Positions 1-30,300 of a DNA stretch of 31,416 nt are shown here, in pieces (positions within the stretch are counted from its first letter, which is position 1; every line of letters begins with the position of its first letter). Source of the stretch: Cyanophora paradoxa CCMP329. Taxonomy: Eukaryota > Plantae > Glaucophyta. A model generated the notes under the pieces. The model ran no database searches, was not told the origin of the DNA, and worked only from the letters and a program-made list of their open reading frames with translations. Where the stretch lies: positions 1 to 31,416 of the forward strand of contig QPMI01000372.1 of the NCBI GenBank assembly GCA_004431415.1, read 5' to 3'. Made by a program: the position numbers and the translations under genes.

Positions 1-1307
1 CGACGCCGTGCCCATCATTGGCATCGGCTGCACCGCCACGATTGCCACCGATAGGACGAAGAAGGTCAGTCGTCGTCGCCGCCGGAAAGCGCGAGCCCCG
101 GGCGCGCTCATTCGAGGGCGCAGGGCGAGCACGCGGCGCACGTGGCGGCGATGACGGCGCTGGGCTGCACGCTCTACTCGGTGAGGCTGGACAAGGAGGC
201 GGGGCGGGAGCGGCACCAGGAGGAGGCGATCGTCTCGGGGCTCGTCGTCCGCGCCCTCGCCGAGGCCTGCGGCGTGCCCTTCTCTGCCGACATCCCCCTC
301 ACCCAGAACGAGCCCATCGAGGCCCGCCCCCGCCCCCCGGGCCCCCCACGCCCGCGCCCCGCGGCTGAGGGGCCGGGGGCGGCAGATGCTGAAGTACGAC
401 TTCGCGGAGATCCGGGCGGCGCTCGACGCCGAGGGGGCCCCCCAGGGCGACCCCGTAGCCGACCTCGCGCGAGGCCAGTAGACCCGCCCCCCCTCTCTGT
501 CCCACCCCTTCTTTGTTGAGAATCGATGGACGCCGGCGTTGATGCGGGGGGTGCGGGGTGTAGGGGCGGTGGGGGCTGTGCTGCTGCACAAGGGGCGGGC
601 GGTGGCGGGGGCGGCGTGGACGGGCGGGCTCGTCTCCGGCTCCTTCAACCCCCTCCACGAGGGCCACCTCGGCCTCGCCGTGCCCGCCCTCCCCCCCTCC
701 CCCCTCCCGGGCGCCCCTGAAGGGGCCGGCAGGAGGAGGCGCGGCGGGCGCTGGGCGGCGCCGACGTGGCTTTCGAGCTGAGCATCGTGCGCGCGAAGCG
801 GGGGGGCGGGGGGCGTGCGTGAAGCAGGGGCCCCGAGGCGACGCGGCGGCAGGTGAACGCGGACAAGCCGGCGCTGGCGGAGGCGGAGATCCGGCGGCGG
901 GCGGCGCAGTTCGCGGAGCGGCCGCTGCTGCTCACGCGGGCGCCGCTCTTCGTCGAGAAGGCGCGGCTCTTCCCGGGGAGCACGATGGTGGGCAGCTGCA
1001 GCAGCAACTCTGCCCTTTCTGCTCTGCCCTGATGCGCTGCCAGGTGGTCGGGCACGACACGTACGAGCGCCTCGTGAACCCCAAGTACTACGGGGGCGGG
1101 GAGGGGATGCGGGCGGCCCTGGAGGAGATCCGCGCCGCCGGCTGCTCCTTCCTCGTGGCGGGCCGCAAGGAGCCGGCGACGGGGGAGTTCCGGGCGCTGG
1201 CGGGGCCCGAGCAGGGCGGCCTCTTCCGGCCCCTCCCCTTCCGCCTCGACCTCTCGAGCACAGAGCTCCGCGCCCGCGCCGCCGCCGCCGCCGGCTCCAA
1301 GTCCTAG
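1..1307 (+). CDS. Nucleotidyltransferase (cytidylyltransferase/NadD-like HxGH superfamily) with CinA-like N-terminal half; 5'-truncated, 5 introns in window
   Basis: Spliced translation: ...IGIGCTATIATDRTKK|GEHAAHVA...DKEAGRERHQEEAIVSGLVVRALAEACG...LVSGSFNPLHEGHLGLA|...FELSI|VNADKP...LLTRAPLFVEKARLFPGSTM|VVGHDTYERLVNPKYY...FLVAGR...FRLDLSSTELR, stop TAG 1305-1307. Introns include 65-123 (GT-AG) and 322-385 (GC-AG). GSFNPxHxGH and SSTxxR are nucleotidyltransferase motifs. Confidence 0.85.
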
Positions 1308-1528
1308 CGAGCCGCCCGGCCCCCGGCCCGGCGAGCCGCGCGCCGATGCAGCACTCTCTCTGAAGAACAGAACTAGGCGAACTAGTACTTGTACATGTAG
1401 ACCAACTAGACTACGCTTTGAATCGATGGTAACTAGAACTAGTCTCAGAATGCGGGTACTCTAATGCAAGCACTTGAACAGGCGACGATTGCACATGCTA
1501 TCGCTAGTAGCGGCCGGCGAAACTGCGG

Positions 1529-2767: not shown

Positions 2768-3288
2768 CTGCGCGTCCCGCGCCCTAGCGAGCGGATATGC
2801 GGATTTACTTTCTGGGCTGGGCCCAGCTAGTAGCTGAGCTGAGCGAGCAGCCTGCCTCGGGTAGAAAATGCTTCTGCGCCGCAGGCGCGCCGGGACCAGG
2901 CTAGGTTGCTGGACCGAGCCCCACCTTTACTCGAGTTGACGGGCCGCATCGGGCTGCCTGGCTGCCGAGAAGATGAGAGGTGGTAACTAGCTAGGCCGCC
3001 GGACCGCAAAACCGCAGCAAACGCATCATGATCAGGCGGCCTGGCGGCTGAGAAGCGGGACTCTTGAAGTCGTGTACCCGGCCCCCGCCTGTTCCCCCAA
3101 TCGAGAAGAAGCGAACGGCGAGCGCGGGCAGGCTGCGTGCGAGCAGCGCGTAGAAGCGCTGCGCGCATTGACAGCCGCTGACGCTAGCCTCGCCGGACGG
3201 CACGCGCTGGTGCTCCGGGCTCAAGCGTGCCTGCACTCGCACTTCGCGGGGCTGGGCATCGCCGCGCGCTCGGTGAGGCGTGTCACGG

Positions 3289-5078
3289 ATGGCGGGGGAC
3301 GCTGCGGCAGCCGTGGATGGCGCTGCATCGCCCAGCGCGTCCGTAACCGTGAACGTCGCGAAAGTTCAGCGCCGGGCGGTTGCTGAGGACAGCGAGCCGC
3401 CCTCGTTGCCCGGAGGCGGCTCGTCTCTTTTGCAGTCGGCACCATCATCCACTACCAGCGGCGCTGTGGCTCCTGAGGCGGCCGGCTTGCCGGACTTCAA
3501 CGAGTTCCTTGGCTGGGCGAAGACCCGCAGCAAGGAGGAACTCGCGCACCAGCTTCACCGCGTTCTCAAGCTGCTAGTGACCCTCGGCATTCTGAATGTG
3601 CGAATTCCGTTCGCGCGGCAGCGCCTGCTGCTGGAGGGCGGCGAGGCGAACGCGGGGGCGGCGGCGGCGGGGCGCGGCGACGACGGGCTGGACGGGACGA
3701 CGCCGGCGGCGATCGCGTGCCTGGCGCTGAACCCCGCGCTCTGCCCGCCGCACAACGCGCCCCTTCTCTCCATCCCCCTCTTCTCCGACCTGGTGGCGCC
3801 CGCCCCCCGCCCCCCGCCCCCCCCGCTCGCGCTCACCGCGCCCCTCTTCCCCCCCCCCCCCCCCCCCCCCCGAAGGGCCGCTACGAGCGGAACTTCGACG
3901 AGGTGGCGTGCATCGGGCGCGGGGCGTTCGGGGCCGTCTTCTCGGCCCGCCACAAGCTCGACCGCTGCCTCTACGCCGTCAAGAAGGTCAAGATCAAGCC
4001 GCGGTTCCCCATGGAGCGGGTGCGCGGGCGGGTGCGCGTGGGCCGGGGCGGGCTTCTGAGGGGGCGCGGCAGCTGCTGAACCTGGACGTGCGGGGCCTCG
4101 GCGAGCTCGAGCACGTCCGCCAGCTCCTCCGCGAGGCGCGCCCCGCCCCCCCCCCCCCCCCCCCCCCCCCGCCACCTGCACACGGCCCGGTCGGCGCTGA
4201 GCGGCGGGGCGGGCGGGCAGGTGACGATCCTGGCTCGCGTCGGCTCGCACGAGAACCTCGTGCGCTACCACCAGGCCTGGATCGAGCCGCAGTTCGACTG
4301 CCCGGGGCGCCCCGCCGGCCCCGCCGGCCCCGCGTGGCGGCCCGAGGGGAGCGGGTGGGAGGAGAGCGCGACGGAGAGCGGGGCGGAGACGACGGCGGGG
4401 GCGTCGCGGGGCGGCCCTTGCCGCCCCTCGCCGCTGCGCGTGGAGGTCCTCCCCTCCGACTCCGAGCGCTCCTCGCCCCCTCCTCCAGCCCGCGCCCTCC
4501 GCCCCGCCCGCGCCCCCGACGAGAGCGCCGCCTCCGCCAGCGCCTCGGCGCGGGCCCCGGGGGGCTCTTCGCGGCGCCCTCGGGGGCCTCGCCGCGCAGC
4601 TCGGGCCCGACGAGTCCGTCGACTGGAGCGAGAGCAGCGCCGCCCCGAGCCGCTCCTTCTCCGCGCCCTCGGCGCCCCCCCGAGGCCTACCTCCCCGCCA
4701 TCGCCGCCCGCCGCCGCAGCATCCCCGGCCCCTCCGACCCCGACTGGCCCTCCTCCCCCGCCTCCCCGGCCTCGCCGCCGCCGCGGGAGGCGCTGGCGCT
4801 CGTGCCGGCGCGGGCGCGGCGGGCGGCCTCGCTTGTCCCGTGCCCGGCGCACTTCGTCCTCTTCATCCAGATGGCCCTCTGCGAGGGGGCGACGCTGCAC
4901 GAGTGGCTGGCGGAGCGCAACCGGCGGGGCGGGGTGGAGCGGGAGGCCAACCTCCGCATCTTCGTCCAGCTCCTCCGCGGCGTCGCCCACATCCACGCCC
5001 AGAAGATCGCGCGCACCCCCGCCCCGCCCCGGCCCCGGCCCCGGCCCCGGCCCCCTCACGGCGCTCCCTCGCCCCCAG

Positions 5079-5110
<32 letters not shown>

Positions 5111-5980
5111 GTCCGCCCCTTCCTCCCCCCCCTCCCGCCGCTCGCCGTTGCTGACGCGCCGGCGGGGCAGCCTGGAGCCGTCGGGGCGGCTGAAGATCGG
5201 GGACTTCGGGCTCTCGACGGAGCTCGCCGGGGCGCCTTCCACGCCCTCCTCCAGCCCCCCCGACACCCCGGCCTCCGCCTCCGCCTCCGCCTCGGCGTCG
5301 CGGGGGACGCGGGACGTGGGGACGCCCTCGTACGCCCCGCCGGAGACGCGCCTGGGGACCTTCTGCGAGGCCTCCGACATCTTCTCCTGCGGCGTCATCC
5401 TCCTCGAGGCGAGCGCCGCCCGCCCCGCCCATCCGCGCCCCGCCCCACCCACAGGCGGCCTTGCGGCAGCTCTTCTGCGTGCTGGGGACGGGGATGGAGC
5501 GGGCGGGGGTGCTGGCGGAGATGCGGGCGGGGTCGCTCCCCGCGCGCCTGCACCGCGACTTCCCCCTCGAGGCCTCCCTCGTCCTCTGGATGACCAAGCC
5601 GAGCCCCGCCGAGCGCCCCGCCGCCACCACCGTCCGCCCCCGCCCGCCCCGCTGTGTTTGGCCGCCCCCGCCGACGGCGCGCCGCGCAGGTGCTAGAGCA
5701 GCTGACGTGCGCGCGTGTGTGGCCGGCGCTGCCGGCGCCGGCGGGGGCGGAGGAGGGGCGGGGCCGGGGCCCGTGCGGGGCGCGGCTGGAGGAGGAGTTG
5801 GAGCGGCGGGGCCGGCGCATCGCCGCCCTCGAGGAGGAGGTCTCCCGCCTCCGCGCCCAGCTCGCCTCCCTCTCGCCCCCGGCCCCCGCCCCCGCCCCGC
5901 GCCCCGCGCCCCCGCTCTCCCCCCTCTCCCTCTCCAGCCCCGGCGAGGGCGCCCACAAGAGCCCCGAGGCCTCCGCCTAG
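3289..5980 (+). CDS. eIF2-alpha kinase, HRI-like (split kinase domain with long insert, C-terminal coiled coil)
   Basis: RYERNFDEVACIGRGAFGAVFSARHKLDRCLYAVKKV; HENLVRYHQAWIE; long S/P-rich insert; LFIQMALCEGATLHEWL; IHRDLKPANIF; LKIGDFGLS; VGTPSYAPPE; SDIFSCGVILLELF; TGMERAGVL. LFIQMxxC, the insert and TxMER are eIF2-alpha kinase hallmarks. Frameshifts are needed at the C-run near 3849-3871 and near 4560. Start codon uncertain. Confidence 0.88.
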
Positions 5981-6065
5981 CTCCAGTCGACTCGAACAAT
6001 ACAGTACAGTAGACCAGCGTGTCTTTGGGGCGGGAAGAAAGGGGGCGGGGCGGAGGGGGGCAGGG

Positions 6066-9014
6066 CTAGGCGGGGGTGTACTCGCCGTCGAGGAGGCCCT
6101 GGAGGACGGCGGGGTCGCTGATGAAGGGGGCCCCGCCCCCGCCCCCGGCCCCCGGGAAGGGCGAGTAGGGGTCGGGGCGGCGCTCGCGCTCGGGGCGCAT
6201 GGACTGGAGGACGAGGCCGGCGTACTTGGCCCCGTCCGCCACCACCTCCGCCGTCATCTCCTCCATCACCCTGCCGGGGGCTAAGGGGAGGGGAGCTCGG
6301 TGGGGGGGGGGGCCGGGGCGCGCGCACACGCTCGTGATCCGGGTGTAGCAGGCGTCGCAGACGAGGGCGGTGCGCTCCTGCCACTCGCGGCGGTCGCGGA
6401 GGCGGAGGAACTCGGGGCGGGTGAGCTGCGGGTGCATGGCGGCGATGAGCGGGGGCACCCCCGAGGCCGCCTCCATCAGCTCCGCCAGCGTGTCGTCCGC
6501 CAGCGCCAGCCGCCCCGCCCCCGGCCCCGCCGCCCCCGGCCCCGCCCCCGCAGCGGGGCGCGCGGCCCCCGCCATGGGCGAGCGGAGCCGGGAGAGGGCG
6601 CTGGCCGGCCTCCGCTCCGCCCCGCCCCCTGCCGGCCTCGTCCTTGGCCGGCGAGGGGCCGGCTCCGGGCCGGGGGCGGGGCGCGGGGCGGGGCCGGGGC
6701 GGGGCGGGGCCGCCGAAGAGGAGGGCGGGGCTGTGGAGCGGGTGGGCGTGGAAGGTCTTCACGGGGCGCGCCATCGCCGACGCCGGCCGCCCCAGCCCGA
6801 ACGAGCCCGAGCGCGACGTCCCGGGCGCCCCGTCCGCCCCGCCGCCGCCGCCGCCGCCGCCAGCGAGGGCGGCGCCAGCACCGCCCCCGCAGCGACGAGG
6901 ATGAGGAGGGCGCCGCCGCCGGCAGCGCCGCCGCCGGGGCCGGCGCCGGCTCGGGGAGGCGGGGAGGAGGGAGGAGGGGCGGTGCGGGTGCGCGCGAGGC
7001 GGGCGGAGCCGGCGCGGGCGGAGCCGGCGCGGGCGGTGCCGGGGCGGGGCGGGGCGGCGGCGGCGTCGATGGCGGCGAGCTGCTCGCCGATGGCGCGCAC
7101 GCGGCTCTGCTGCGCCGCCGTCGGCTGGAGGTACGAGGCGACGACGGCCGGCTCCCTGGGCGGCTCGGCGGCCGGCACGAGCGCCGCCGAGCGCGGCCGC
7201 CGCCGCGTCGTCGCCGCGCTCGCCGGCCGCGAGAGCGACGCCGCCGAGGCCGAGGCCCCCAGGCCGGCCGCCCCGCCCGCCCCGCCGGCCTCCGCCGCCG
7301 CTCGCCGCCGCTCCTCCGCGTCGTGGTGGTGCAGGTACTCCCTGCCCGCCCCGTCGGTCCCCGCGGCGGCCGAGGAGCAGCGCGCTGGGCGCGGCGCACC
7401 GGTAGGTCACCTCGTGCTGCGAGTCCGGCGCGATGTCTGCGCGCCGGCCGGCCGTCAGGGAGGGCGCGGGGGCGGGGCCGGCTCGCGGGGAGGCACCGCT
7501 GACGGAGCGGCAGGCGGGGCACTCGAAGTAGTGCTGGCGGAAGAGGCGCTCCTGGCCGGGGGCCTCCTTCTTGTGCTTGGCGGCGCGCGGGGCGGGGACG
7601 CCGGGCTGCATGTCGAGGGGCTGGTGCATCTGGGGGAGGAGGGGCCTGCGGACGTCGAGGCGGGCGCCCTCGAGGCGGACGGAGGAGCAGTAGAGGAGCC
7701 AGATGCGGTCCTCCTCGTCGATGCGCAGGTTCAGCACCATGCGCGCGATCCGCTGCCGCCCGTGCGTCGTCCGCTGCACGTGGTCCACCACGCTGCCGCC
7801 CCGCCCCCGCTCAGCCACGCCCCCGCCTCCCCGCCGCCCGCTGCGCACTTGAGGCAGATCTCCCCGATCTCCCGCTGCACCCGCTCCCCGCGGAGCTTCG
7901 CTGCGCCCCGCTCGCGTCCCCCGCGGCGCGGGGCGGGGCGGGGCGGGGCGGGGCGGGCGCACTGGTCTCGCGGAGGTGGTCCGGCCCCTCAAAGGTGACC
8001 GCTGCGCCGGCTGCGTCAGACGCCGCGCCGCGCCGCCGGGCAGCCCGGGTGCCCGGAGCCATACCCCGCTCGTACATGTCGAGGCGCGTGTTGGAGAGGA
8101 CCGCCTTGTTCGTGCACTGCGCCGGCGGCTCGGGCGCGGGGCCGGGGCGGAGGGGGGCGGGAGGGGGCGGCGCGCCTGCTCGACGATGGTGATGATGGGC
8201 GTCCAGACGACGCGGATGGTGAAGTTGGACTTGCCGCGCGGCGGCAGGAACTTCTGCAGGATCCTGCCCCCGCCCCCGCTCCAGCGCCGCCCGGGGCGCG
8301 CGCCGGGGCAGGGCGGGCCGGCGCGGACCCGTTGTTGACTTTGCTGCGAAAGAAGAGAAAGTCGTGGAGGCCCTGCCGGTCGAAGTACTCGATGACCAGC
8401 TTGCCTGCCGCCCGCCCGCCTCAGAGGCGACCGCCCGCCCGCCGGCGCGTCGGCCGTCCCAGAGGCGGAGGCGCACCCTCTCCGCCGCCGGAGACGGAGA
8501 TGTACGAGGCAAGGATCTCGCACTTCGGCTTGCGCTGCTCCGAGAAGATCTCCTCGATGCGGTTGTTCTTAACCTCCCACTTGGCGCGCTGCTCCACGTG
8601 CGTCTCCGCGCCTTCCGTGTGGAACCTGCGCCACCCGAGCCGCTCAGCGCTGCATGCCGGCGTGGGCCGGCGCGGGGCTGGCGGGGCCACGCAGGGCTTG
8701 GCAGGCCCGAATTGGCGGGTGACTTAGCTAGGCTGAGCTGGGGGCAGCTCCAGGAAGAGAAAGGCAGAAAAGGAGAAGATCTAGACTTGAAGACGTTGCA
8801 CGGGCTTCGCTAGGGGGTTACGCTGCGCTGGGGCAGCCAGTGATCTAGTCTGAGCGAGCAGGCACCAGTAGGCGGGCGAGCGGTACTTGTACACGACTGT
8901 CTCGGGCACGCGGACGCCCGGGCAGGTAGAGCCGGCCTCGTTCTCAAGCGCTAGGTAATGAAACAATGAGTCGACCACGCCATCCCCCTCAAGGGGCGGC
9001 AGCGTGGACGCCAT
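6066..9014 (-). CDS. Conserved uncharacterised protein with Cys-pair motifs
   Basis: Spliced translation: MASTLPPLEGDGVVDSLFHYL...VRVPETVVYKYRSPAYW|F...VIEYFDRQGLHDFLFFRSKVNNG|ILQKFLPPRGKSNFTIRVVWTP...MYERA|VTFEGP...RMVLNLRIDEEDRIWLLYCSSVRL...FECPAC...LVCDACY, stop TAG at 6066. From memory it resembles an unnamed family seen in flagellated protists; not searched. Confidence 0.75.
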
Positions 9015-9335: not shown

Positions 9336-11528
9336 ATGCAAGAAGATATACAAGATGACAGCCTGCTCATGTGCGAGCTAAGCCGAGATCTGCCTGGCAC
9401 TCCCGTTCAAGGCGCCCAGACCGCGCAACCGGGCACACCGGATCAGCGTGCGGTGCGTCGGAAATGCTCAGAATGATCCCTTAATTGCATCTGAGCGCTT
9501 TGCTGACGCCCGCACGTACGCGCTTTTGAATGCAGGCGGATGCAGTTCGAATTCTCTGCCAGCTTCAAACCACGCTCTGCAAGGCCGGCTGCACCACGCT
9601 CACCTGCGAATCGGACGATGATGAAGAAGACTCTACGGACGCGTGCACACAGGCGCTGCCGTGCTCGAGGATCCTCGTCCGCGTCCTGGAGGAACACGTC
9701 GAGATCGCTGTGCGCGAGCGCGCGGCGCGCTCCCCGCGTGCGCATGCTGATTTCCGAACGCGTATCGTGCAGTTTGATACGGAGAAGTGCGCGCCCGGCG
9801 ACGTTTTTCCCAGTCCGGTCAATTCAAATTGCGGGTCGCTCCGAGTGCATGTGGACTCGAGCGGGGCCCGCGCGCTCTCCGTGCCGTACGACGACGTACG
9901 GGGCGTGGACTACGTGCCGTGGGGCCGCGGCGCGGTTGTGATCATCCGGCTGCGGTCGCCGCCGCGGGAGGCGGAGGCGGTGGGCGTCGCGTTCGACGCG
10001 CGGGCGCGGGGCGGCGACTCGGTCTCGTTCTACGTGGCGGAGGAGGAGGCGCTGGAGCAAGTGCAGGTCGCCCTCGAGCGCGCCGCCGTCGAGGGCCGCC
10101 GCGAGGCCTACCTCGCCTGGGCCATCGACGAGCCCCGCGGCCTCCCGCTCCGGAGCCCCCGCGCCGAGGCCCTCGCCCGCGCCCACTGGGGCGAGCCCGG
10201 CGCGCCCCGCGCACACGCCCGGCCCCGCGGCGGGAGCGAGGCGGGGAGCGAGTGCGGGGAGGGGGCGACGAGGGCTGGGACGAGCGCGTGGCGGCCCTGG
10301 AGGAGATCGTCCTCCGCCGCTCCGACCTCGAGGCCTGCGCCGCCCCCGACGAGCTCCTCACGCCCGCGCCGCCGACTTCTTCCTCCAGTGCGCCGCCCCG
10401 CCCGCCCGCCGCCGCCGCCGCCGCCGGGCCCCGCCGACGGGGGCAGGCGCATGCGCGAGATGGTGCGGGCTGCGCCGGCGTGCGAGTCGCCGTCGGGGAG
10501 CGGGCGGCGGCCGCGCGTGGCCATCGCGCCGACCTCCTTCTACCGCAAGCTCTCCCTCCGCCTCCAGGCCTCCGACGCCGCCCAGGTGCCCAAAGCCCGC
10601 CCGGCCCGCCCCGCCCCGCGCCGCGCCCCCTGACGCAGCCGGCAGGGTCCCCTCCCGCCCGACTTCGGCCTCCGCCACTCCGACTTCGCCCTCGTCCCCA
10701 TCTGCGAGCGGTCCGCCCGCCCCCGCCCCTCCCTCCCGCGGGGGCCGACGCCGGGGCGCAGGGGCCGCTGGAGCCTCGCCATCGTGTGCAACGGGCGGGC
10801 GCTGGGGCGGCCGCGGGGCCGGCCCTCGACGGGGCGCCCGCACATCCTGCACGTGGGGCAGCCGGGGCTGGCGAGCCTCAAGGCCCCCTCCGTCCTCCGC
10901 CGCTACCTGGAGCTCCTCCGCGACGCCCCGCACCTCTCCCCGTCCCCGGCCCGCCCCGCCGCCCCCCCCCCGGCCTTCCCCATCCCCAGCCCCGCACGCC
11001 GCCCGCCTCCGCGGGGCCCTCCCGCGCTCCTCGCGCGTGCGGGCGCGCCGCGCGGCCGGGCGCGCCGCCGCGTGGAGCTCCTCCAGCAGCGGCAGCGAGG
11101 CGGAGCGCGAGGCCCCGCCCCGGGAGGCCCGCCCGCGCCTCGCCGGCCCGGCGCGGCCCCGGCGGCGTCGGGCGGCGGCGCCGCGGTCGCCGGCGTCGAC
11201 GGCGTCGTCGGAGGAGGCGGGGGAGGCGTGCTGGCAGGTGCCCGTGCACGACGTGGAGGCGCCCGAGGCGCTGGCCCCCGCGGAGCTCCCGCTGCTGGTG
11301 CTGCTGCTGGTGCGGCGCCTCTGCGAGCGGCCGGACGCCTTCCTCTACGAGCTCGTGCGGCCCCTGGAGGCCCTCCTCGCCGGGCCCGACTTCTCCCGCC
11401 CCGCCCTCCGCGCCTTCCGCTCCACCCTCGCCGCCGACCTCTCCGCCGCGGCCGCCGCCGCATCCGCCGCCGCCTCCGCCGCCGCCTCCGCCTCCGCCGG
11501 CCCCTCCGCCCCACCCCGCACCCCCTAG
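9336..11528 (+). CDS. Ulp2/SENP6-7-like (peptidase C48 fold) protein lacking catalytic residues
   Basis: Colinear C48 motifs after splicing: IVLRRSDLEACAAPDELLTPA(A)ADFFLQ, VAIAPTSFYRKL, DFALVPICER|GRWSLAIVCN, RPHILHV, VLRRYLE, VPVHDVEAPE...LPLLVLLLVRRLCERP. Needs 2-3 single-base frameshifts (about 10260, 10367, 11000). Confidence 0.7.
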
Positions 11529-11615
11529 CACTGCCCGCCCACTTTTTTGTTTTTCGGGTACCGCAGTGAATCGATTGAATCGAGCACGCTTTTTCCAGTT
11601 GACGGCAGCGGGGGG

Positions 11616-13151: not shown

Positions 13152-13242
13152 CAGAATCTACGGCGAGCCGCGAACGAAGTGCCCCGTAGCCCCCCGGAAC
13201 CTGGAAAGTCTGGAAAGGAATCGCACCTCCGATTTCCTAGAA
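13152..13242. promoter_or_regulatory. Candidate bidirectional promoter (91 bp between two divergent ATGs)
   Basis: ybeY ATG is at 13151 (-) and the next gene's ATG at 13243 (+). The spacer has lower GC and contains the direct repeat CTGGAAAG-T-CTGGAAAG at 13201-13217. Confidence 0.55.
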
Positions 13243-14278: not shown

Positions 14279-14380
14279 TCAGAGGGTGGCGTCGTAGCGC
14301 CTGCGGTCTTGATCTGCGCGGGGCGAGGCCTCAGAGGGGGCGGGGAAGGAGACGATGGCTCGGGGCGGGGGGGGGGGGGG

Positions 14381-14413
<33 letters not shown>

Positions 14414-16567
14414 CGGGGGCGGGGCGGGGCGGGCCGTTGCGGAGGGTGCGGTACGCCTCGTTGACCTCCTTGAAGCGCCGCTCCGACTCCGCCCTGCGCG
14501 CCCCCCGTCACCCGCCCGCCCGCCCGCCCCGCCCCGCGCGAGGCTCGGGGTCCAGGGGCGGCCGCACTTCTTGGCGGGGTCGGTCTGCCGGTCGGGGTGC
14601 TGCGCCCCCGCGTGAGGCCGCCGGGAGGCGAGAGCGAGCTGGGAGGGGCGGAGGCGGGGCAGGGGGGCGGGCGGACCCATTTGAGGGCCTCCTTGCGGAA
14701 GGCCGTCTTGATCTCCTCCGTCGTGGCTGAGCGGGGCACGCCCAGCACGTCGTAGTGCGTCCTCCCCCGGCCCCGCCCCGGCTGCTGCCCCTGCTGCTGC
14801 TGCCGCCCGTAGCCCTGCTGCCGCCCCTGCTGCTGCCGCTGCTGCTGGCCGTAGGAGTACTGCTGCTGGCGGCCGTACTGCTGCTGGTTCCGCTGGTACT
14901 GCTCGTACTGCTGCTGGTAGCCCCACGTGTCCTCCTCCGACGCCGCCTCGAACTCTGCGCGGGGTAAACAAGCGGCATAAAGACGAGGCGAGGGGGCGGC
15001 GGGCGGCGCGCCGAAGCCGAAGTGGTCGAAGTGGGGCCGGGAGTGCTTGAGGGAGGCGGCGGCGAGGCCGCGCAGGCCGGCCTCGAGCCACGCAAAGAGC
15101 GCCGCCCCGCCCCGCGCGTACACGTACGCGCACGCGGCGCCCACCAGCGCGCACGAGAGCACCGAGGAGTCGGCCCCGGCGAGGGCGCCCAGCACGCCGA
15201 GGGCGAGGCCGCCGAGGCCGCCGGCGAGGGTCGTCCGCCACGTCGAGTAGAGGAGGTCGCCGGCCACTGCCCCCGTCACCCCGCTCACCACCACGTGCTG
15301 CGTCAGCGCCCCTGCGCCCCGCCCCCTCGCCGGCCCTCCCCGGGGCGGGCGGGAGGGGCGGGGAGGGGCGGGCCCTGGGAGAAGGGGACGATGTAGGAGG
15401 GGAGGGCGACGGGGAAGCAGCGCGCGAGGCGGACGTTCAGCTCCACGCGGTCCAGCACCACCCGCGAGCCCCCGCCCCTGGTCGGGTCAGCCGGCGCGGG
15501 CCAGCGGGCGCGGCCGGCAGCCGGCGCGGGCACTTCTGGCGCAGGAGGCGGGCGGCGTTCTCGCGCTCGCGGCGGTGTATCAGGGGCTCCACCTGCGAGC
15601 GCCACGCCTCCCTGCCGCGCGCCCTCAGCGCCCCGCCCCGGCCCGGCGGCCGCCCCCCGCGACGCACTGGGAGCCGACGACGGGGCTCACGACGTTCGCG
15701 TAGCGCGTCGCCGCCTGGCGGCCGGTGAGGGGCGCAGGGCGGGGCGGGGCGGGGCGGCGGACGGGGTCGAAGGGGAGGGACTTGGGGAGGGCCCCGGGCG
15801 GGGCCTTGAGGGTCGGGAGGAGACCGCCGCGGATCTCCATGGCGGCGTCGATCTGCATCTCGGCGTCCGCGTCGTTCGCGTGGCTCGACTCGTACGCCGC
15901 CGTCAGCGGCCGCCACTCCGTCACCGTCCGCTGCTCGAACCGGTTCGTCGAGTGGTTGAACTGCAGCTCCGTCCGGTCGTACCCCACTGCCGGCCGGCGG
16001 GGCTCGTCGGCCGTCCCCGGGGCGAGGGAGGGCGGGGAGGGGCCGGTGCGGGCCCCGCACCTCGCCCCTCCACGGCGACCGAGACCTTCACCTCGAAGAC
16101 CCAGAAAGGATAGCTGGGCGAAGGAGGCCGGCGCGGCGCGGTCAGGCGGCGTAAGGCTTGACGCGCAGCGGGCTCTGCCGGCGCTCGCTTACTAGTGCTG
16201 CTGCGGATTCTGGGAGCGCAGAAACGTGTCGAAGGCGCCGCTCGCGAGGGTCTGGCCCTTGCTCCAAGCCGCTATCTTCGCCCTCGCCTGCTCCTGCGAG
16301 ACCTGGAAGGGGATGTACCGCCGCCCGACCCCTGCGCCGTACGCGTCGGCGTTTGCGGGCGCTCGAACGGCGTCTCCCGCACACGCGCGACTCGGCAAAG
16401 CTCGTACCGGCCCAGTACCGCCTCACATGCGCGTGCGGCAGCAGCGCGAGCGCGGCCGGAGCGCCGACGAGTCGGGCGCCGGCCGCGGCCGCAGCTCGCG
16501 TCCCTGCCGAGCGCGAAGCCGCGGAGAACGCCGCCGTCGTAAGCGCTCGCACCGCGTAGCTGCTCAT
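14279..16567 (-). CDS. C-terminal J-domain (DnaJ) membrane protein, probably mitochondrial
   Basis: Arg/Ala-rich presequence-like start MSSYAVRALTTAAFSAASRSAGTR. Then YIPFQVSQEQARAKIAAW...HY|YPFWVFEV...ALPSYIV...VVVSGVTGAVAG, two hydrophobic segments, a Gln-rich linker, and THYDVLGVPRSATTEEIKTAFRKEALKW|HPDRQ...RRFKEVNEAYRTLRN|...RRRYD, stop TGA at 14279. About 9 introns. Confidence 0.85.
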
Positions 16568-16962
16568 GATCGCACGGTGCAGGCCGCACGTCGCCGCCCG
16601 CTGGGCGAGCGCCGCGCTGGCTGTGCAGCTAAGCATCCGGCGCCGGCGCCGAAGATTGGAAGCTTTAGCGAATCTCCAGGCGCTGTGCTACGTGTGCTTC
16701 GTGTTCGTCCGGCTTCCAAAGTCCGCAGAGGCCATGCCGGTCGACGTCCCCTTCTCCCGCTTACCCCCCCCTCCGCCCCCCCCCCGCCCCCCTCCCTTCG
16801 TGTCACGGCTGCAGCCGAAAGGCAATTTACTGCGCTACGAACAGGGGATGGAGCAAGCGCTGGCTATAGCTAGCGGAGGCTGCGGGCAAGGCCAGAAAAA
16901 GCGGGAGCCGGGCAGCAGCCAGGCGCCAGCGCGGGGCGCCTGCGGGGGGCGGCTGGGGGTGC

Positions 16963-18614
16963 CTATTCCTCCTTCTTCTTCTGGCCGGGCTTCTTCTTCT
17001 CCTTCTTGCCCTCGCTGAGGGTCGCGCTGTCCACGAAGTCCGGGTACTTGAGCTTGAACGGGTCCCGCCCGGGGCCCATCGTCAGCTCCGCCGCCTGCAG
17101 CGCCCCCCTCAGCCCGGTCCCCGGGGCGCGGCGGGCGGGCGGGCGGGCGGGCGGGGGCGGGGCGGACGGCGGCCTCGGGTGCCTCGGCGGCGTCGGGCAC
17201 GAAGGTCGGGAAGGGCGGCAGCTCCGCGAACTTCTTCTGCGGGCAGCCTCAGGCGGGGCCGGCGCAGGCGGGGCGGAGCGGGGCGGGTGGGCGGGCCTTG
17301 ATGGCGTCCTTGACGCGGGCGTAGGAGCCGGCGTGCCCGGGCACGTTGCCCTTCACGAACAGCAGGTTCCGCGCCGCATCCACCTTGAAGATCTGCGCCG
17401 CCGCTCGCCGGCGGGGCCCCGGCGGGGCGGGGCGGGGCGGGGCGGGGCGGGGCGGGGGCGGGCCTGGAGGTTCTGGATGGTGCGGGTGGCGGCGCCCAGG
17501 TGCCCCGCCATCTTCTTCCCCTTGAACACCCGCCCGGGGTCCTGCACCCCGCCCGCTCGTCGAGGGCCCGGCCCGGGGCGGGGCGGGGCGGGGCGGGGCG
17601 GGCCTGGCGGTTGCCGGTGGAGCCGAGCACGCGGTGGCTCAGCGAGTTGCCGTGCGACGCGCCCTGCCCCGCGAAGTGGTGCCGCTTCATCGCGCCCTGG
17701 AAGCCCTTCCCCACCCTGCGCCCCCGTCGGCGGGGCCGCCCGGGGCGGGGCGGGGCGGGCGGGGCGCACGAGGTCCCCTGCACGTCGATGTACTGCCCGG
17801 GGAGGAAGTGCCGCGCCGTGATCTCCGTGCCTGAGCCCCGCCCGCTGAGCCGCGGAGGCGGCGGGGCGGCCGCGGGGCGGGCGCGCCGACGGGGACGACG
17901 GCGTCGGGGGTGACGCGGAACTCGCAGATGTGGCGCTTGGGCTCGACGCCGGCGCGCGCGAAGTGGAAGAGCATCGGCTTCGTCACGTGCTTCGGCTTCA
18001 TGTCGCCCGTGCCGACCTGCAGCGCGTAGTAGCCCTCCTTGGCCGCCGTCTTCACCTGCAGCACCTTGACCGCCTCCAGCTGCGCGCCGCCGCGTGAGGC
18101 CGCCGCGCGCCGGCCAGCCGCGCGTGCGGCGGCGCTTGCATGCGCATGTGCGTGCGCGGGCGGCGGCGCGCACCTGGAGGACGGTCAGGGCGTGCCGGAC
18201 GCCCCAGGAGTCCCAGAGCGGCATCATGCCGCATTTCTTGGCGATCACGCCTGTCCGCCGCCACGAAACCGTCCAGCCGTCCTTCTGATCGAACGTTTCC
18301 CTCCGCACGTACTCCTTGTCCTCCTCCTTGCGCTCCCGAGTCTTGACGCCGAGGCCCATCCACTCGACCTTCTCGCCTGTCTCGGGGTCCCACATATCGG
18401 GCATATCCTCCTGTTTTGGCGCTATAGGCCACCGTTTGAGGACGCGCCGCTGGAACGCGTTGAGCTTTTCCGTGCCCAGCTTCTTGGCCGGGACTGTCGT
18501 GCTCTTTTGCCGGATGATGAGCAGCGCCGCGGCTGGGCCGGCGATGCCTAGAGCTACGACGGTCGCGTTCGGCCGCGCGGACCGCCCGGCGGCGAGGGCG
18601 GCCGCCGCCAGCAT
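16963..18614 (-). CDS. MRPL3: Mitochondrial ribosomal protein uL3m
   Basis: [29 protein letters not shown]|...EGYYALQVG...[19 protein letters not shown]|[37 protein letters not shown]|[16 protein letters not shown]...QNLQ|[19 protein letters not shown]...VRVKDAIK|...PFPTF. Presequence-like N-terminus; 7 introns, 4 of them GC-AG. Confidence 0.95.
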
Positions 18615-18748: not shown

Positions 18749-21700
18749 ATGAGTGCGATGGAGCGCGACACGCTCGCGCACTACCTGCTCGTTGTCGGCG
18801 TGCGGGACTTCGCCGAGCCGCTGCATTCGAAGTACCAGAGTGCGTGTTGCGCGCCGCACGCCCGCGGCACGCTAGCTAAGGGCGCGCGGCAGTCACAAAG
18901 TTCAACGACATCTTCGCCGTGCCCTTCAAGCCGCAGCTCTTGGAGCGCGTGCCGAGGAAGGACAGGAGCGACGTGCCGCTGAACACGGCCAGCGTTCCCT
19001 CCGTGCGCCGCCCGGCCTGCCCGGAGGTGCGCGCCGCGGGCCTGCCGCTCATGCGGCCCCCGCGCGGCGCAGTTCTGCTTCCCGCGGGGCCTGTACTTCG
19101 CGCGGGACGGTGACCTGCCGGCGCCGACGTTCCACACGTTCGTCATGACGGCGGCCGACGCGAATGCGACGCGGATCCACGGGGCGGCGCTCGTGTTCTA
19201 CGAGCCCGTCTACCGCCCCATCGACATCGAGATCGGCTCCCTCGTCGACCCCCCGCCCGAGCGCAAGGGCTCCTCCGCCGTCCGCACCGCCTCGCCGCCC
19301 CCGCCGCCCCCGCCCGACGCCGGCGGGGCGCGCAGGGGGCCGGCTCGGGGGCCCTCTCGCCGGCGCGCCCGCAGCAGCGCTCGCTGATGCCCGGCGTGAG
19401 CGCCCCGGCGGGGAGCCCGTCCCGCGGCAGCGCCCTCGCGGGGGCCGCGGGGACGGTGCGCATTCCGACGGGGGGCGCGTTCGTGCCGAAGTGCTTGTGC
19501 GTGGTGTCGCGGCACGGGATGTACAACACCTTCCGGAGCTTCCTCGCCCAGCTCCTGCGCCTCGTCAAGTCCAAGGCGCCCCTCCCCATCGAGCGGTGCG
19601 CCCCGCCCCGCGCGCCCCGCCGCCCCCGCGCTGGGCGCCGAGGCCCCGCGCCTGCAGGTACATCGCTAACTTCCTGGGGGAGGTGCCGCTGCCGCCGCGC
19701 GGCCTCGTCGTCGTCCGCCACGTCCTCGGCGACAAGGCCCGCCCCGCCCCGCCCCCTTTCCCCGCCCGCCTGACGAGCCCCCCGCGCCCCCGCAGATCCT
19801 CTCCATCTCCCGCTCCCCCGCCAACGACTTCCCCCCCGCCGACGCCCGCCCCCCTCCCCTCCCCGCCCGCCCCTCCCTCCGCCGCGCCTGACGAGGGCAG
19901 GGGGGGCGCAGTTCTCGTTCCGGCCCCTCTTCCAGGCGCTGGACTGCCGGAACGTGGCGCTGCTCTTCCGCTGCGTCCTCCTCGAGCGCCGCGTCGTCCT
20001 CTCCTCGCGCCGCCTCCAGCTCGCCGCCTGCGTCGCCGACGCCCTCACGTACCTGATGTTCCCGTTCCGCTGGCACCACCTCTACATCCCCGTCCTCCCC
20101 GGCGACCTCGACCAGTTCCTCTCCGCCCCCATGCCCTTCATCATCGGGGTGCACCCCTTCAGCATCCCCCCGGGGCCCAAGCCGCCCCACGTCGTCTGGG
20201 CCGACCTCGACAACAACCTCGTCGAGACCCCCGGGGCGGTCCCCGCACTGCCCGAGCCGCAGGGCGCCGCGCTGCGGGAGGCGCTGCGGCAGCACGCGGC
20301 GCTCTTCGAGCCGGAGCACCCCGAGCTCGAGTGCATCGACTACGCCTACTCGCGCGACTCGGCCTTCCAGCCCCGCCCCATCCGCGCCTTCTCCGCCGGC
20401 CTCCGCCCCGTCGCCGGCACCCCGCTGGTGCCGGCCGAGGAGCCCTCGCTGCTGCGCTCGTTCTTCTCGGGGGGCGAGGCCGGGGGGTCGGTGCGCGCCG
20501 GCGGCATCCCCCAGCACTTCCCGACGGGGGAGGGGTACTACATCTCGCCGGACTCGAAGGGCCCCGTCTTCCCCGGCCACTCGGAGTCGGAGGGGGACGG
20601 GCGCGGCCTCAACCTCCCCGCCGTCAAGCGCGCCTTCCTCCACTTCTTCGTCTCCCTCCTCGCCCCCTACCGCCAGTTCATGCGCCCCGCCCGCCCCGCC
20701 CCCAAGGAGGGCGAGGAGGAGGAGAGCGACGGGGAGGATGAGGAGCACTTCGCGCGGCGGGCCTTCCTCGCGCAGCACTCGCCCCAGGCGCAGCCCTTCC
20801 TCGCCCAGTTCCTGGAGACGCAGGCGTGGCAGGAGTTCGTGGAGGAGCGGGCGCGGGGCGGGGCGGACGCGCACGAGGCCGCCTTCTTCGACGCCCACGT
20901 CGCCGCCCACCTCGAGTCCCTGGCCCGCCCCCCCCGCCCCCGCCCCGCCCCCGCCCCCGAGCCCCGCCCCGCTGAGGCGGCGGGGGCAGGGGGCCGCCTC
21001 GGCGTTCTCCCTGCGGCCCTTCGCGCGCCCCTTCCTCGCGGACGCGGAGCAGTTCGGCTTCCGCGGCGTGCACGTGACCCCGGACCCCGACCCCTCCCAC
21101 GTCCACCCCAGTGCGCCCTCCCCTCCTCGCCGGCGGCGCGGCGCGGCGGCTGAGGCCCCGCCGCAGACGAGTACTTCGAGTACAGCCGCTTCCCCGCGCT
21201 GCAGGACTCGCGCCTCCCGGGGCCCCGCCCGGGGGCCCTCCCCGCGTGGCCCCCGCTGCCCCCGGCCCCCGCCATCCGGGTGCCCACGCTGGAGCTCGCG
21301 CGCGTCCCCTCCCCGCCCCCCTCGAGCAGCAGCCGCTCCTCCTCGCCGGCCCCCTCGGGGCGCTCCTTCGGGGAGGAGGCGCTCTCGGCGCTCGAGCGCG
21401 TGCTGGAGGCCCTCGGCGTCGGCGTCGGGCGCGACGAGAAGGACGAGCGCGGCCCCGGCGACGAGGAGGAGAGGGGGCCGCCGCCCCTCCGCAGCCCCGC
21501 CTCGGCCCCCGACCTCCTCCACCTCCCCCCGCGCGGGCCCGCCGGCTCGCCCCCGCCCGCCTCGCCCCTCCCCGAGCGGACGCGGCCCCTCTCCGCCTCC
21601 CACTCCTCCCTCGGCCTCTCCTCCTCGCCCCGCCGCCCCGCGCCCGTCCCGGCGGCGGGGAGCCCGCACCGGGCGCCCCTCCAGCTCTCCCTCATCTCCC

Positions 21701-23105
21701 CCACCGCCTCCCACGCCCCCCGCGCCCGCTCCGGCGCGCCCCCGCCCGCCCTCTTCTCCCTCGCCGGCCCCGGCCCGGCCCCGCCGGCGCCGCCGGCCCC
21801 CGGGCGCGCCGGCGCGGGCGGCGTCGCCGGCGGTGGCGACGCTGACGCAATTCTTCTCGAGCAAGTTCCGCCCGCGGGAGCAGCAGGGCGAGGCGACGCG
21901 CATCCAGGCCGCCTGGCGCGCCTACCGCGTCCGCCGCGCCTGCGTCCGCCCGCCCCGCCCGCCCGCCCCCGCCGCCCGCCGCGGGGCCCGACGGGGCGCG
22001 CAGGAGGTGCACTGGGCGGCGCGCTGCTCGGCGAGCGCGGTGCAGGCGCCGTCGTGGCGGCGGCTGCTGGGCCTGCAGGCGGCGTGCGCGTGCCGCATCC
22101 AGGCGGCCCTCCGGCGGCACCTGGCGGGGCACGTGGCGCGCGTGCTCGTGCGGCAGCGCGTGCAGGTGCTCCTGCGCGAGGGCCTCGTCCCCGGCTGGGC
22201 CCAGGCCTCCATGCCCCTCATCCACCGCTCCCGGCCCGCCCCGCCCCGCCCCGCCCCGCCCCGCGAGGCGCGGCGGCTGAGGGCAGGGGCGGGGGCAGGG
22301 TGTTCGAGCGGCACTGCACGCGGCCCTCGTGGGGCTCCCTCGTCGCCCTCAAGAACGAGCTCGACACGCTGCGGCGCTACCTCGTCCACCTCAGCCCCAC
22401 CGCCCCCGGGCCCGCCGGCATCGTCCGCAAGGAGCGCCAGCACGTGCGCCCGCCCCGCCCCGCGCCCCCGGCCCGGGTGACGCCCCCGGGGCCAGATCGC
22501 GGAGGTCGTGCGCAAGTGCCTGACGTCGACGGACATCGCACGGCTGCAGTCCTCCCTCCGCGTCTCCACCCACTCCCGCAAGGTGCGCCCCCGCGGGAGC
22601 GGGGGGCGGGGGGCGGCGGCTCAGGGCGGGCGTGGGCAGGCGGGCCCGCTGGACGCGCACGCGGCGATCGCGGAGCGGGTGTGGGAGGACGAGCGCTCGG
22701 CCGACGACTCCGCCCGCCTCGTCTTCCTCACCGGCACCTACGTCCGCCCCCCCCGCCCCGCGCCCTCCCCTCCCCCCGCCCAACCCGCCCACCCCGCGCG
22801 CCCCGCAGATCGCTCTCGAGCGGGGGCTCGTGCTGGGCGATGTGCGGGGGCCCCATCCCCCCCGCCCCGCCCCCGGGCCCCCGCTGACGGGCCGCAGACG
22901 CGCTCGGAGCTGATGGCGCGGTACGGGGTCCAGGGGGGGACGAAGCGGAAGCGGCAGCTGGTGCGCAACCTCTGGAACTCGAACCCCGCCAAGACCCAGC
23001 GCATCCTCGCCGAGGTGCCCCCGCCCCCCACCTCCCCCCGCCCCCGCCCCCGCCCTCGTGACGCGCCGGCAGCTCGGCACCCGCGGCTTCACCGTCCTCG
23101 ACTAG
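18749..23105 (+). CDS. DENN-domain Rab GEF-like protein with IQ motifs and a NACK/kinesin-7 C-terminal-like segment
   Basis: uDENN: HYLLVVG...[10 protein letters not shown]...FCFPRG...FHTFVMT...HGAALVFYE. cDENN: [11 protein letters not shown]...[28 protein letters not shown]...[15 protein letters not shown]...[10 protein letters not shown]...VVWADLDNN. dDENN: [16 protein letters not shown]...[16 protein letters not shown] motifs [15 protein letters not shown] and [13 protein letters not shown]. Stop TAG 23103-23105. Confidence 0.9.
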
Positions 23106-27300: not shown

Positions 27301-30300
27301 CCCGGCCCCGCCCTCGCTCCCCAGCTCGCTCTCCCCCTCGCCCTCCTCCCCGCTCTCCTCGTCCGTCGACGCGTTCTTGTCGATCAGCTGCGCCGGGGCC
27401 GGTCAGAGAGGGCGGGGAGGGGGCGGGGGGGAGGGGAGGGGGCGGGCCTTGGTGCGAATGTAGTAGCGGGCGACCTCGCGGATGACGGGGCGGGGGATGG
27501 AGAGGAGGATGTCGTCGACGCCGCGCATGACGCGCCGGACCTTGCGGAAGGCCGGCTGGAAGATGCCGAGCGCCAGCACGAAGAGGAGGAGGATCGAGGC
27601 GCCCAGCACGGCCCCCAGGATCCCCTTGGAGAACTTGGTCGTCAAGTACACCTCCTTCTCGTACAGGTCGCACGCCGTCCGGAAGGCCTCCAGCACGGGG
27701 CCCAGCGCGTTGTCGAACACGTACCGGAAGTTGCGGTCCGTGTCCGGCACCCGCTGCGAGCGCGCGCGGGTGAGCGCGTGGGCCCCCGGGGGGCGGGCAG
27801 GGGCGGGGCGGGGCGGGGAGGGGCGCACAAGCTTGTCGGGGTCGGTGTGGGCGAGCTTGCGGAGGCGGACGCGGTAGGAGTTGCCGAGGTCCCAGAGGTT
27901 CATGACGACGTCGCGGTACATGGGGTGCAGCGCCGAGGGGAAGTAGTCCCGGACGGAGATCTGCGAGGTCTTCCAGTAAAACTTGACGATGTCCTTGGTG
28001 GAGGCCTTGACGCCGTCGGGGAAGCCGAAGTAGAGGCCCAGGTGGTCGTACTGGAACTCGTCCATCTTCGCCGTCAGCAGCTCCGCCGCCGCCGCCGCCG
28101 CCGCCGTGTGGTTGCTGTACGCGTGCAGCTGCAGCGTCCGCGCGTACTGCGCCGCCGTGACGACGATGCGGCGCTGGAAGCTGACGGAGCGGGCGCGCTC
28201 GATGGCGGCGTTGAACTCGGCGAAGATGACCTGCACGGCGACGAACATGGCGATGGCGCAGCCGACGAGGAGCAGCAGGCCGACGGTGACGCCCCACGAG
28301 AGGCGCGAGACGGCCGACTCGTCGCGGACGGCGAGCACGAGGTCGCGCCTCTGCGCCTTCTTCAGGTTGTTCAGCGCCGAGGCCGACGAGGCCGACGACT
28401 GCGACTGCGACGCCGACTGCGAGACCGACTCGGAGACGCTCCCCGTGAGGTGCTCCGAGCGGCGCCCGTTCTCCCCGCCGTCCTCGCGGCCCTCGCCGCG
28501 CTGCTTGGCCTGCGCCTCCTGCTCCTCGACGTCGTCGGCGCGGGCGAACTGGACGATGGCCGCCTCGGGCTGGTTCTTGACGTCCTGGAGGAAGGTCCCG
28601 TAGGCGCGCAGCAGGACCTTGGAGTGGGGGAACTTGGAGAGGAGCGTCCGGTAGTTCGTTTCCGCCCCCGACTTGAGCTCCTCGATCGCCGCCAGCCGCG
28701 CCGGCGCCTCCTCCAGCAGCGCCTGCCGCCCCGTCGGCTGCGCCGGCCGCAGCGCCGCCGGGGCGGGGCGGGGCGGGGCGCACGACGGCGCCGGGGGAGT
28801 TGAGGTCCTTGCGGTGGAGGCCGCGCCAGAAGCCGCGCAGGAGCACGAGCGCCTGGTTGTGGTGCTCCTTCGCCTGCTCGTACATCCGGCTGAACTCCAG
28901 CGCTGCCCGCACCCGTCGGCCCCGCGCCGGCGCCGGCCGAGGCGGGCGGGGCGGGGGCGGGGCGCACTGCGGAGGAACTCGCCGGCGCCGGCCTCGGCGC
29001 CGGCGGCCTGCTCGCGCTCCCACGTGCGGCGCATGCAGCTCAGCTGGAAGCGCAGGTCCACCACGGGGTTCTTCCGCCACGCCTGCTTCACCTGCCCGCC
29101 CGCCCCGCGCGTCGCGCCCTGCCCCGCCCCGCCCCGCCCCGCTCGGCCCGGCCCCGGCGCACCTCGATCATGGCGGTGAGGGGCGATTTCTTGTAGAACG
29201 AGACGAAGCGGCTGTGGCAGATCTGCACGTACGCTGCGCGCCGAGAAGCCGTCGTCAGGCGCCGCGCGCTGGGCTGGGAGGGGCGGGGCGGGGGGCGCCG
29301 CGGGCACCGGAGGAGGGGAACTGGGCGAGGGCGGCCTGGTAGATGCGGTCGGCGGCCTGGATGGCCTCCTCGGAGGCGTCGTGGCGCAGGAAGCGCGTCG
29401 AGACCTCCACCTCCATCGGCGTCCAGAACTTGGGCGTCTCCTCCGGCCGCTGGAACTTCTGCAGCTTCCAGAACCGCCGCCCTGCCACGCCCGCCCCGTC
29501 AGGAGGCCGGGGCCGGGGCCGGGGCGGAGAAGCCGCCAGCGAGGGCGCACGGGAGGCCTCGAAGCCGATGAAGAAGCCCGGGATGAGGAGGAACTGGGCG
29601 CCGTAGGTGGCGTAGGCGCGCCACGGGAAGGACTCGTCGTCCGTGTCCATGGGGACGAAGCAGAAGCCGGCGCCCATCGCCGCGTAGAGCATCGCCGACG
29701 AGGTCAGGCCCGAGCGCGTCCAGGCCAGCCAGGGGACGTAGATGTACTGCGAGACGGCGGTGTAGAGGAAGAGCGCGAGGAGGCCGATCGTGATGATCAG
29801 CGAGACGATCGTGTTGGGGGCCACGATGAAGTTGGTGACCCACACGAGGGCGAGCTGGGAGGCCATGAGGAGCACGTCCGGGCGGCCGTGGGCCCGCCCC
29901 GAGAGGGCCTTGGTGTCGGGGGCCGGCGAGTGCGCGAGCAGGGCGCAGGCGAGGCACTCGGGGACGAGCAGGACGACGAGCACGATGGCGACGGGGGCGT
30001 AGAGCATCCACGGGAACGTCCCGCACACGAAGAAGTTGCCCGCCTCGGCGCCCTCCCGCATCACGAGGCCGTCGGGCGAGGCCCGCCCCTCCATGCACTT
30101 GAGCACCCGCGAGAGCAGCTTCGCCGTCGGGATGAAGAGCCCGTACGAGAAGAGCCGGATCACGCTTCGCCACACCCCCGTCGGGATGTTCTTGAACGTC
30201 TCCCCCGTCTGCGCCGGCCCCGCCCCATCGGCCAGGCGCCGGCGCGGCGCGGCGGCGGTTCCACGGGGCGGCGCACGCGGGAGGAGTAGACGATGAACGC

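Follow-up and report, generated by a model that had tools for sequence, protein, structure and literature searches.

Known GC-AG introns and the Cyanophora window

In animals and plants, introns that start with GC and end with AG (GC-AG introns) account for about 1% of all introns and show a stronger match to U1 small nuclear RNA (snRNA) at the other positions of the donor, or 5' splice site. Such rare introns, with the stronger U1 match at their remaining donor positions, are said to have been described by Thanaraj and Clark in 2001. We analysed a stretch of 31,416 nucleotides (nt) from the glaucophyte Cyanophora paradoxa CCMP329 (contig QPMI01000372.1, positions 1 to 31,416 of the forward strand), hereafter called the window, in which 14 of the 42 introns of four publicly modelled genes start with GC and end with AG. 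In our judgement it is quite probable that these are genuine, ordinary U2-type spliceosomal introns of this alga and that a standard spliceosome tolerates a GC-driven drift of the donor in very short introns, with compensation at the last exon base (position -1) and at the fifth intron base (position +5).

The closest described cases are found in other algae. GC-AG fractions of 39.6% in Aureococcus anophagefferens, 22.2% in Micromonas pusilla and 7.7% in Chlorella sp. were published and related to high G+C content by Iwata and Gotoh (2011, PMC3033335), according to whom the U1 pairing sequence of Aureococcus and of M. pusilla is identical to the consensus AUACUUACCUG and the origin of the abundant GC-AG introns is an enigma. 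In M. pusilla CCMP1545, GC donors amount to 25.6%, and about 50% is cited for Emiliania huxleyi (van Baren et al. 2016, PMC4815162). The Micromonas donor has been given as AG|GTGCGT and that of its introner elements as AG|GYGCGT (Verhelst et al. 2013, PMC3879977). An earlier reading of the window, made from its letters and here called the original prediction, had mentioned that GC-rich donors are known in some other algae, and the reports on Aureococcus, Micromonas and Emiliania bear this out.

The genome of Cyanophora paradoxa has a G+C content of 67.6% and was assembled from long reads that were corrected with Illumina data (Price et al. 2019, PMC6704402). Within the window G+C is 70-81% throughout. 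Cyanophora resembles the GC-rich algae in its high-G+C nuclear genome, in the tens of percent of ordinary introns that start with GC and in the equal length of the GT and GC classes, but it is a glaucophyte, a member of a third archaeplastid lineage. Its introns measure 48-121 nt in both classes alike, and their median of about 61 nt stands against 150-180 nt in Micromonas. Compared with the GC-AG introns of animals and plants, those of Cyanophora are 20-30 times more frequent and match standard U1 poorly, at about 4.4 of 9 positions.

In a literature search that did not extend to the supplementary material of the 2012 Science genome paper, we found no publication that connects Cyanophora with U1, with splice donors or with GC-AG introns. 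GC-AG introns go unmentioned in the main text and the examined supplements of Price et al. 2019 (PMC6704402); the public gene models of Cyanophora paradoxa already contain the introns described here.

Verification of the GC-AG introns

The original prediction listed 11 intervals as GC-AG introns in a gene for a mitochondrial-type ribosomal protein uL3 (uL3m), a kinase gene, a DENN gene and a further gene termed gene 1. All 11 start with GC and end with AG on the strand that was named (minus for uL3m, plus for the others), and 10 are exactly introns of public Cyanophora paradoxa gene models on contig tig00001574. These correspondences were established with four public EukProt proteins, three of them named tig00001574_g9349.t1, g9354.t1 and g9355.t1, which match gene products of the window with 100% identity and were mapped residue by residue onto it. 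The 'tig' names are those used in the long-read assembly of Price et al. 2019 (PMC6704402), which identifies the window as nuclear DNA of Cyanophora paradoxa. At each junction all cuts yielding the same protein were enumerated and the GY-AG rule was applied; at every mapped junction of the original list the only cut obeying this rule was the one originally proposed. The original prediction also placed GC introns in the J-protein gene, whose public model has three. The four genes and their 14 GC-AG introns are given below; P0002 is the uL3m protein of Cyanoptyche gloeocystis, taken from an MMETSP transcriptome.

16966..18614, minus strand: uL3m, mitochondrial-type ribosomal protein uL3; 8 exons and 7 introns, 4 of them GC-AG; public model P0001 = tig00001574_g9355.t1, Pfam PF00297, maps exactly.
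17831..17886, minus strand: uL3m GC-AG intron of 56 nt, donor tcg|GCGCGC; in the public model; P0002 gap-free at VPVG|TEIT; in-frame GT-AG alternatives delete 4-12 residues.
17542..17603, minus strand: uL3m GC-AG intron of 62 nt, donor cag|GCCCGC; in the public model; P0002 gap-free at GNRQ|DPGRVF; GT alternatives delete at least 9 residues.
17393..17463, minus strand: uL3m GC-AG intron of 71 nt, donor cag|GCCCGC, with a (CCCCG)n tract; in the public model; P0002 gap-free at IQNLQ|IFKVD; no in-frame GT-AG pair within 30 nt.
17237..17296, minus strand: uL3m GC-AG intron of 60 nt, donor aag|GCCCGC; in the public model; P0002 gap-free at DAIK|KKFAEL.
3289..5977, plus strand: eIF2-alpha-kinase-like protein kinase; 9 exons and 8 introns, 3 of them GC-AG; public model P0003 = tig00001574_g9349.t1, PF00069/PF07714, maps exactly.
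4136..4220, plus strand: kinase GC-AG intron of 85 nt, donor gag|GCGCGC; in the public model; homologues gap-free at LLRE|VTILA.
5009..5078, plus strand: kinase GC-AG intron of 70 nt, donor atc|GCGCGC, no G at -1; in the public model, unique junction position; homologues gap-free at HAQKI|IHRDLKPANIF.
5409..5469, plus strand: kinase GC-AG intron of 61 nt, donor gag|GCGAGC; in the public model; homologues read G(V/L)ILLEL across the junction; the sole length-neutral GT-AG alternative would replace VILLE.
18758..23102, plus strand: DENN-domain protein; 17 exons and 16 introns, 4 of them GC-AG; public protein P0008, 1126 amino acids, 100% identical, maps exactly.
19737..19795, plus strand: DENN GC-AG intron of 59 nt, donor aag|GCCCGC; in the public model; best homologues gap-free.
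19844..19911, plus strand: DENN GC-AG intron of 68 nt, donor gac|GCCCGC, no G at -1; in the public model, unique junction position; homologues read LPxxDFxFRPLF across the junction; no in-frame GT-AG alternative.
20923..20989, plus strand: DENN GC-AG intron of 67 nt, donor ctg|GCCCGC; in the public model only, the 3' exon not being conserved.
22234..22298, plus strand: DENN GC-AG intron of 65 nt, donor ccg|GCCCGC, absent from the original prediction; in the public model; no in-frame GT-AG pair within 30 nt.
14282..16636, minus strand: J-domain protein; 12 exons and 11 introns, 3 of them GC-AG; public model P0158 = tig00001574_g9354.t1, PF00226, maps exactly.
15312..15373, minus strand: J-protein GC-AG intron of 62 nt, donor agg|GCCCGC; in the public model.
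14955..15011, minus strand: J-protein GC-AG intron of 57 nt, donor tcg|GCGCGC; in the public model.
14314..14434, minus strand: J-protein GC-AG intron of 121 nt, donor acg|GCCCGC, with a long poly-C tract; in the public model; the DnaJ profile match ends at the donor.

The public models were built with BRAKER1/Augustus and STAR-mapped RNA-seq and are hence not fully independent evidence. Independent support, in the form of a gap-free homologue alignment or a Pfam profile, was obtained for nine of the originally listed junctions and for one junction of the J-protein gene. The Cyanoptyche gloeocystis protein aligns without gaps across all four GC junctions of uL3m, and the homologues of the kinase do so across LLRE|VTILA, HAQKI|IHRDLKPANIF and GVILLE|LF. 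For the DENN protein the best homologues are gap-free across the junctions at 19737 and 19844, for example at FPPAD|FSFRPLFQ. In the J-protein, one match to the Pfam DnaJ profile (positions 1-28) stops at an exon end and another (positions 38-55 of 63) stops exactly at the GC donor at 14435. At the junctions that were checked, excision of the GC-AG intron restores an uninterrupted conserved protein.

Alternative junctions were sought for 11 of the GC introns. No in-frame GT-AG pair lies within 30 nt for three of the 11, and each in-frame GT-AG alternative within that distance for the remaining ones deletes or replaces conserved residues. No transcript contigs are on record for the uL3m protein, and a search of metagenomes with the DENN protein found no related genomic loci.

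Frequency of the GC-AG introns

When the four public models are pooled, GC-AG introns make up 14 of 42 (33%), with 4/7 in uL3m, as the original prediction had counted and model tig00001574_g9355.t1 agrees, 3/8 in the kinase, 4/16 in the DENN gene and 3/11 in the J-protein gene. Position +2 of the intron accordingly accepts C far more often than in most eukaryotes, in line with what had been proposed.

For the genes that have no public model, namely gene 1, a gene at 6-9 kilobases (kb) and a gene for a TmcB-like protein with a TPR_TmcB Pfam match, introns were predicted with our own small gene finder, which was trained on the mapped genes and tested by leaving out one gene at a time. In this test it recovered 14/14 GC introns and 18/28 GT introns, and it over-called GC introns (precision 14/22), so that its raw counts are an upper bound and were not used as evidence. 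It predicted 35 introns in these genes; among the 20 that have typical features four are of the GC class, and the following three are credible candidates.

322..385, plus strand: candidate GC-AG intron of gene 1, 64 nt, donor gag|GCCCGC; reads GC...AG; picked by the gene finder only.
27388..27447, minus strand: candidate GC-AG intron of the TmcB-like gene, 60 nt, donor aag|GCCCGC; gene finder only; typical length, CTGAC branch-like motif and CAG acceptor.
8117..8175, minus strand: candidate GC-AG intron of the 6-9 kb gene, 59 nt, donor cag|GCGCGC; gene finder only.

The first of these is the one interval of the original list that is in no public model. Nothing spanning its junction was found in Pfam, NCBIfam or PDB, and no homologue covers it. 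For the whole window we estimate roughly 17-18 GC-AG introns among some 72-77 introns, i.e. 23-27%, close to the earlier hand count of about 16 in about 75. The GC share is uneven between genes, from 57% in uL3m to about 8% in the TmcB-like gene.

Donor signal and compensation

The donors of the window follow a real G-Y-S-C-G-C consensus. In the 28 GT introns the most frequent hexamers are GTGCGC and GTCCGC, eight each, the others including one GTAAGC and one GTACGA, and the 14 GC introns use GCCCGC (nine), GCGCGC (four) and GCGAGC (one). The atypical donor code of the original prediction is therefore upheld, and the four hexamers that it had named as predominant do account for 29 of the 42 donors. 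Over all 42 introns C is found at +4 in 38, G at +5 in 38 and C at +6 in 34. Relative to a background of intron interiors (57% C, 30% G), position +5 has a relative entropy of 1.20 bits, +4 of 0.47, +6 of 0.23 and +3 of 0.21, from which it follows that a G at +5 within C-rich sequence accounts for much of the apparent "CGC" consensus.

The donor shares with that of Micromonas the G-Y-G-C-G at +1 to +5, the C at +4, the G at +5 and the frequent AG in front of a GC donor. It differs in having C and not T at +6 and in having C at +3 as often as G.

Two introns of the J-protein gene on the minus strand, 16114-16192 and 16332-16407, have the standard-looking donors GTAAGC and GTACGA beside G-Y-S-C-G-C donors. 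Since both are used in this gene, an A at +3 or +4 is still accepted in the Cyanophora paradoxa genome.

In the duplex of U1 with the 5' splice site, the G at -1 pairs with C9 of U1, the G at +5 with C4 and the U at +2 with A7. A G at -1 was found in 12/14 GC donors against 9/28 GT donors (Fisher p=0.0025), and all three credible candidates have it too. All 14 GC donors carry G at +5, and all 14 carry C at +6, which is present in 20/28 GT donors. As the G at -1 and the G at +5 both pair with standard U1, the lost pair between U at +2 and A7 is offset in the GC donors. Cyanophora thus has the same compensation as animal and plant GC-AG introns, and its GC donors are compensated at other donor positions in the way that is characteristic of U2-type GC-AG introns. 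The original prediction had drawn attention to GC donors that lack the G at -1, at 5009 and 19844. They are real and supported by homologues, but they are the sole two among 14 and thus the exception.

Intron body and 3' end

GT-AG or GC-AG termini are retained in all 42 introns, and the acceptor is CAG in 40 of them. A CTSAB motif occurs within positions -40 to -6 of the 3' end in 22 introns, the others offering only three to four A's. In 18 of the 42 introns G makes up more than 50% of the 15 nt that precede the acceptor, whereas in 19 this stretch is pyrimidine-rich; with such G-rich 3' tails many introns have no polypyrimidine tract.

In the mapped introns, tracts of (CCCCG)n or long poly-C directly follow the donor, e.g. 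in 17393-17463 (minus), 22234-22298 (plus) and 14314-14434 (minus). Within 30 nt downstream of the donor hexamer C makes up 74% in the GC class and 57.5% in the GT class (p=0.018), and the number of CCCCG/CCCGC units per intron is 6.3 and 3.6, respectively (p=0.02). This excess may reflect a mutational link with the repeat, which would then be a driver of the C at +2, or an intronic splicing enhancer.

Two further features were considered and rejected. Base pairing of the C-rich 5' part of the introns with their G-rich 3' part gives no signal other than that of composition, the mean z being -0.1 against dinucleotide shuffles in both classes. Introns of the minor, U12 type have the donor /RTATCCTT and the branch site TCCTTAAC; none of the 42 donors resembles this type, all being G-Y-S-C-G-like.

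Origin of the GC donors

Our inference is that Cyanophora has standard snRNAs and owes its donors to mutational drift. Under a strong GC-biased pressure of mutation or fixation, those donor positions that tolerate change would drift to C or G, which would yield the S at +3, the C at +4 and +6 and the C-rich tract after the donor. In the same manner T would have given way to C at the second base of between a quarter and a third of the introns. The positions that are key to pairing with U1 and U6, the G at +1 and the G at +5, would be retained, and where +2 is C the last exon base would almost always be G, so that one U1 base pair is restored. Recognition would then rest on a reduced donor together with the narrow intron length (intron definition), and would be helped by the CTSAB branch-like motif, which about half of the introns have at a distance of 10-29 nt from their 3' end, and by the nearly invariant CAG acceptor. 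Taken with the algal precedents, the compensation at -1 and +5 places the Cyanophora introns within a known kind and does not make them evidence of a rewired spliceosome.

Several points weigh against this explanation. Pairing with standard U1, which averages about 4.4-5 of 9 positions, is weak for GC donors. The C at +4 (38/42, 90%) clearly exceeds the C content of the intron around it (57-65%), and a selection for C at this position that goes beyond standard U1/U6 pairing is likely. The sample consists of one window with four genes and 42 introns, and splicing at exactly these sites is shown by protein conservation and RNA-seq-guided public models only.

A different origin would be that the GC donors arose in, or spread with, a repeated intron family or a (CCCCG)n microsatellite, in the manner of the introner elements of Micromonas. 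We regard this as unlikely, while giving it some weight, because the GC class has the C-richer 5' part and the more numerous CCCCG/CCCGC units described above, nine of its 14 donors are GCCCGC and so continuous with the repeat, two introns are identical in their first 30 nt and, in M. pusilla, 79% of GC donors lie within introner elements (PMC4815162). However, no pair among the 42 introns aligns over at least 70% of the shorter one, all similarity being confined to simple repeats of at most 33 nt; the same tracts are present in GT introns, and C at +3 is not significantly associated with GC donors (p=0.11). With no long identity shared among the 42 introns, an introner-type family is ruled out: unlike those of Micromonas, the Cyanophora introns are not copies of an element and share only simple (CCCCG)n tracts. 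In its remaining form the repeat would concern the origin of the GC donors, and it could be compatible with a tolerant standard spliceosome.

It is rather improbable that recognition of the 5' splice site has itself changed, the U1 5' end, the ACAGAGA box of U6 or the modification of that box, or a protein monitoring +2 having co-evolved with G-Y-S-C-G-C. The frequent C at +4 and at +6 (38/42 and 34/42), both of which mismatch standard U1, would fit such a change, as would the two homologue-supported GC donors that lack G at -1. Base modifications or U1 snRNP (small nuclear ribonucleoprotein) proteins have been suggested for other algae by Iwata and Gotoh (PMC3033335). Co-evolved snRNAs are reported for Entamoeba (10.1101/2022.06.08.495308) and tunicates (PMC13326754), which share with Cyanophora a lineage-wide departure from the GTRAGT donor; unlike these lineages, the window suggests no snRNA change and keeps GT/GC-AG termini in 42/42 introns. 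The compensation by G at -1 and +5 fits standard U1, standard-type donors (GTAAGC, GTACGA) are still in use in the same gene set, the composition of the introns yields most of the C signal at +4 and +6, and U1 is standard in two algae with comparable GC-AG fractions (PMC3033335). For these reasons the proposal of the original prediction that a variant U1 5' end or U6 ACAGA box has altered recognition is disfavoured. The window itself contains, by an Rfam search, no snRNA and no other family. Slightly more doubtful again is the concrete version in which G-Y-S-C-G-C donors are read by a modified step. For example, the ACAGAGA region of U6 could differ in sequence or modification, the U1 5' end could carry a substitution, or U1C or Prp8 could check +2 in an altered way. 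If true, this version would account for the nearly fixed C at +4 and for the GC donors without G at -1.

That the junctions are mis-modelled and nearby GT donors truly used is very improbable, in spite of the BRAKER1/Augustus origin of the public models and the over-calling by our gene finder (precision 14/22), for alignments are gap-free at nine listed junctions, 3/11 tested introns have no alternative within 30 nt and the other alternatives damage conserved residues. That the C at +2 is an assembly or base-calling error for T is scarcely credible, as it would require at least 14 T-to-C substitutions, all precisely at +2, in an Illumina-corrected assembly (PMC6704402), and random error would not make the GC and GT classes differ at -1 G, +6 C and C-tract content.

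Implications

The window extends to the glaucophytes a connection that has been described in a pelagophyte, a prasinophyte and a haptophyte, that of a G+C-rich genome with a large share of GC-AG introns; it adds no evidence for a new mechanism of GC tolerance. In practical terms gene prediction in Cyanophora must permit GC donors, since tools restricted to GT would break about one intron in four. Over-calling of GC donors is the opposite risk, as our own gene finder shows. For splicing biology, the value of these very short introns lies in their minimal donors (+1 G, +5 G, -1 G), which form a natural series.

Other features of the window

Gene 1 (window positions 1-1376, plus strand) probably runs past its predicted stop at 481 by means of a standard-looking GTCAGT donor near 470. 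The extension would lead into a part resembling nicotinate-nucleotide adenylyltransferase, with an NCBIfam/Pfam match to the N-terminal motif at 590-679. The gene finder split this region into two genes.

The plus strand has an open frame of 1280 codons at 9787-13629, in DNA of 81% G+C and with no Pfam match. Over this region the gene finder wavers between a plus-strand gene at 9530-12412 and a minus-strand gene at 11616-13151.

As read from the sequence, two similar GT-AG introns, 13829-13905 and 13924-13995 (plus strand), both with the donor GTGCGCC, enclose an 18-nt microexon, which sits in a small plus-strand gene starting at about 13745.

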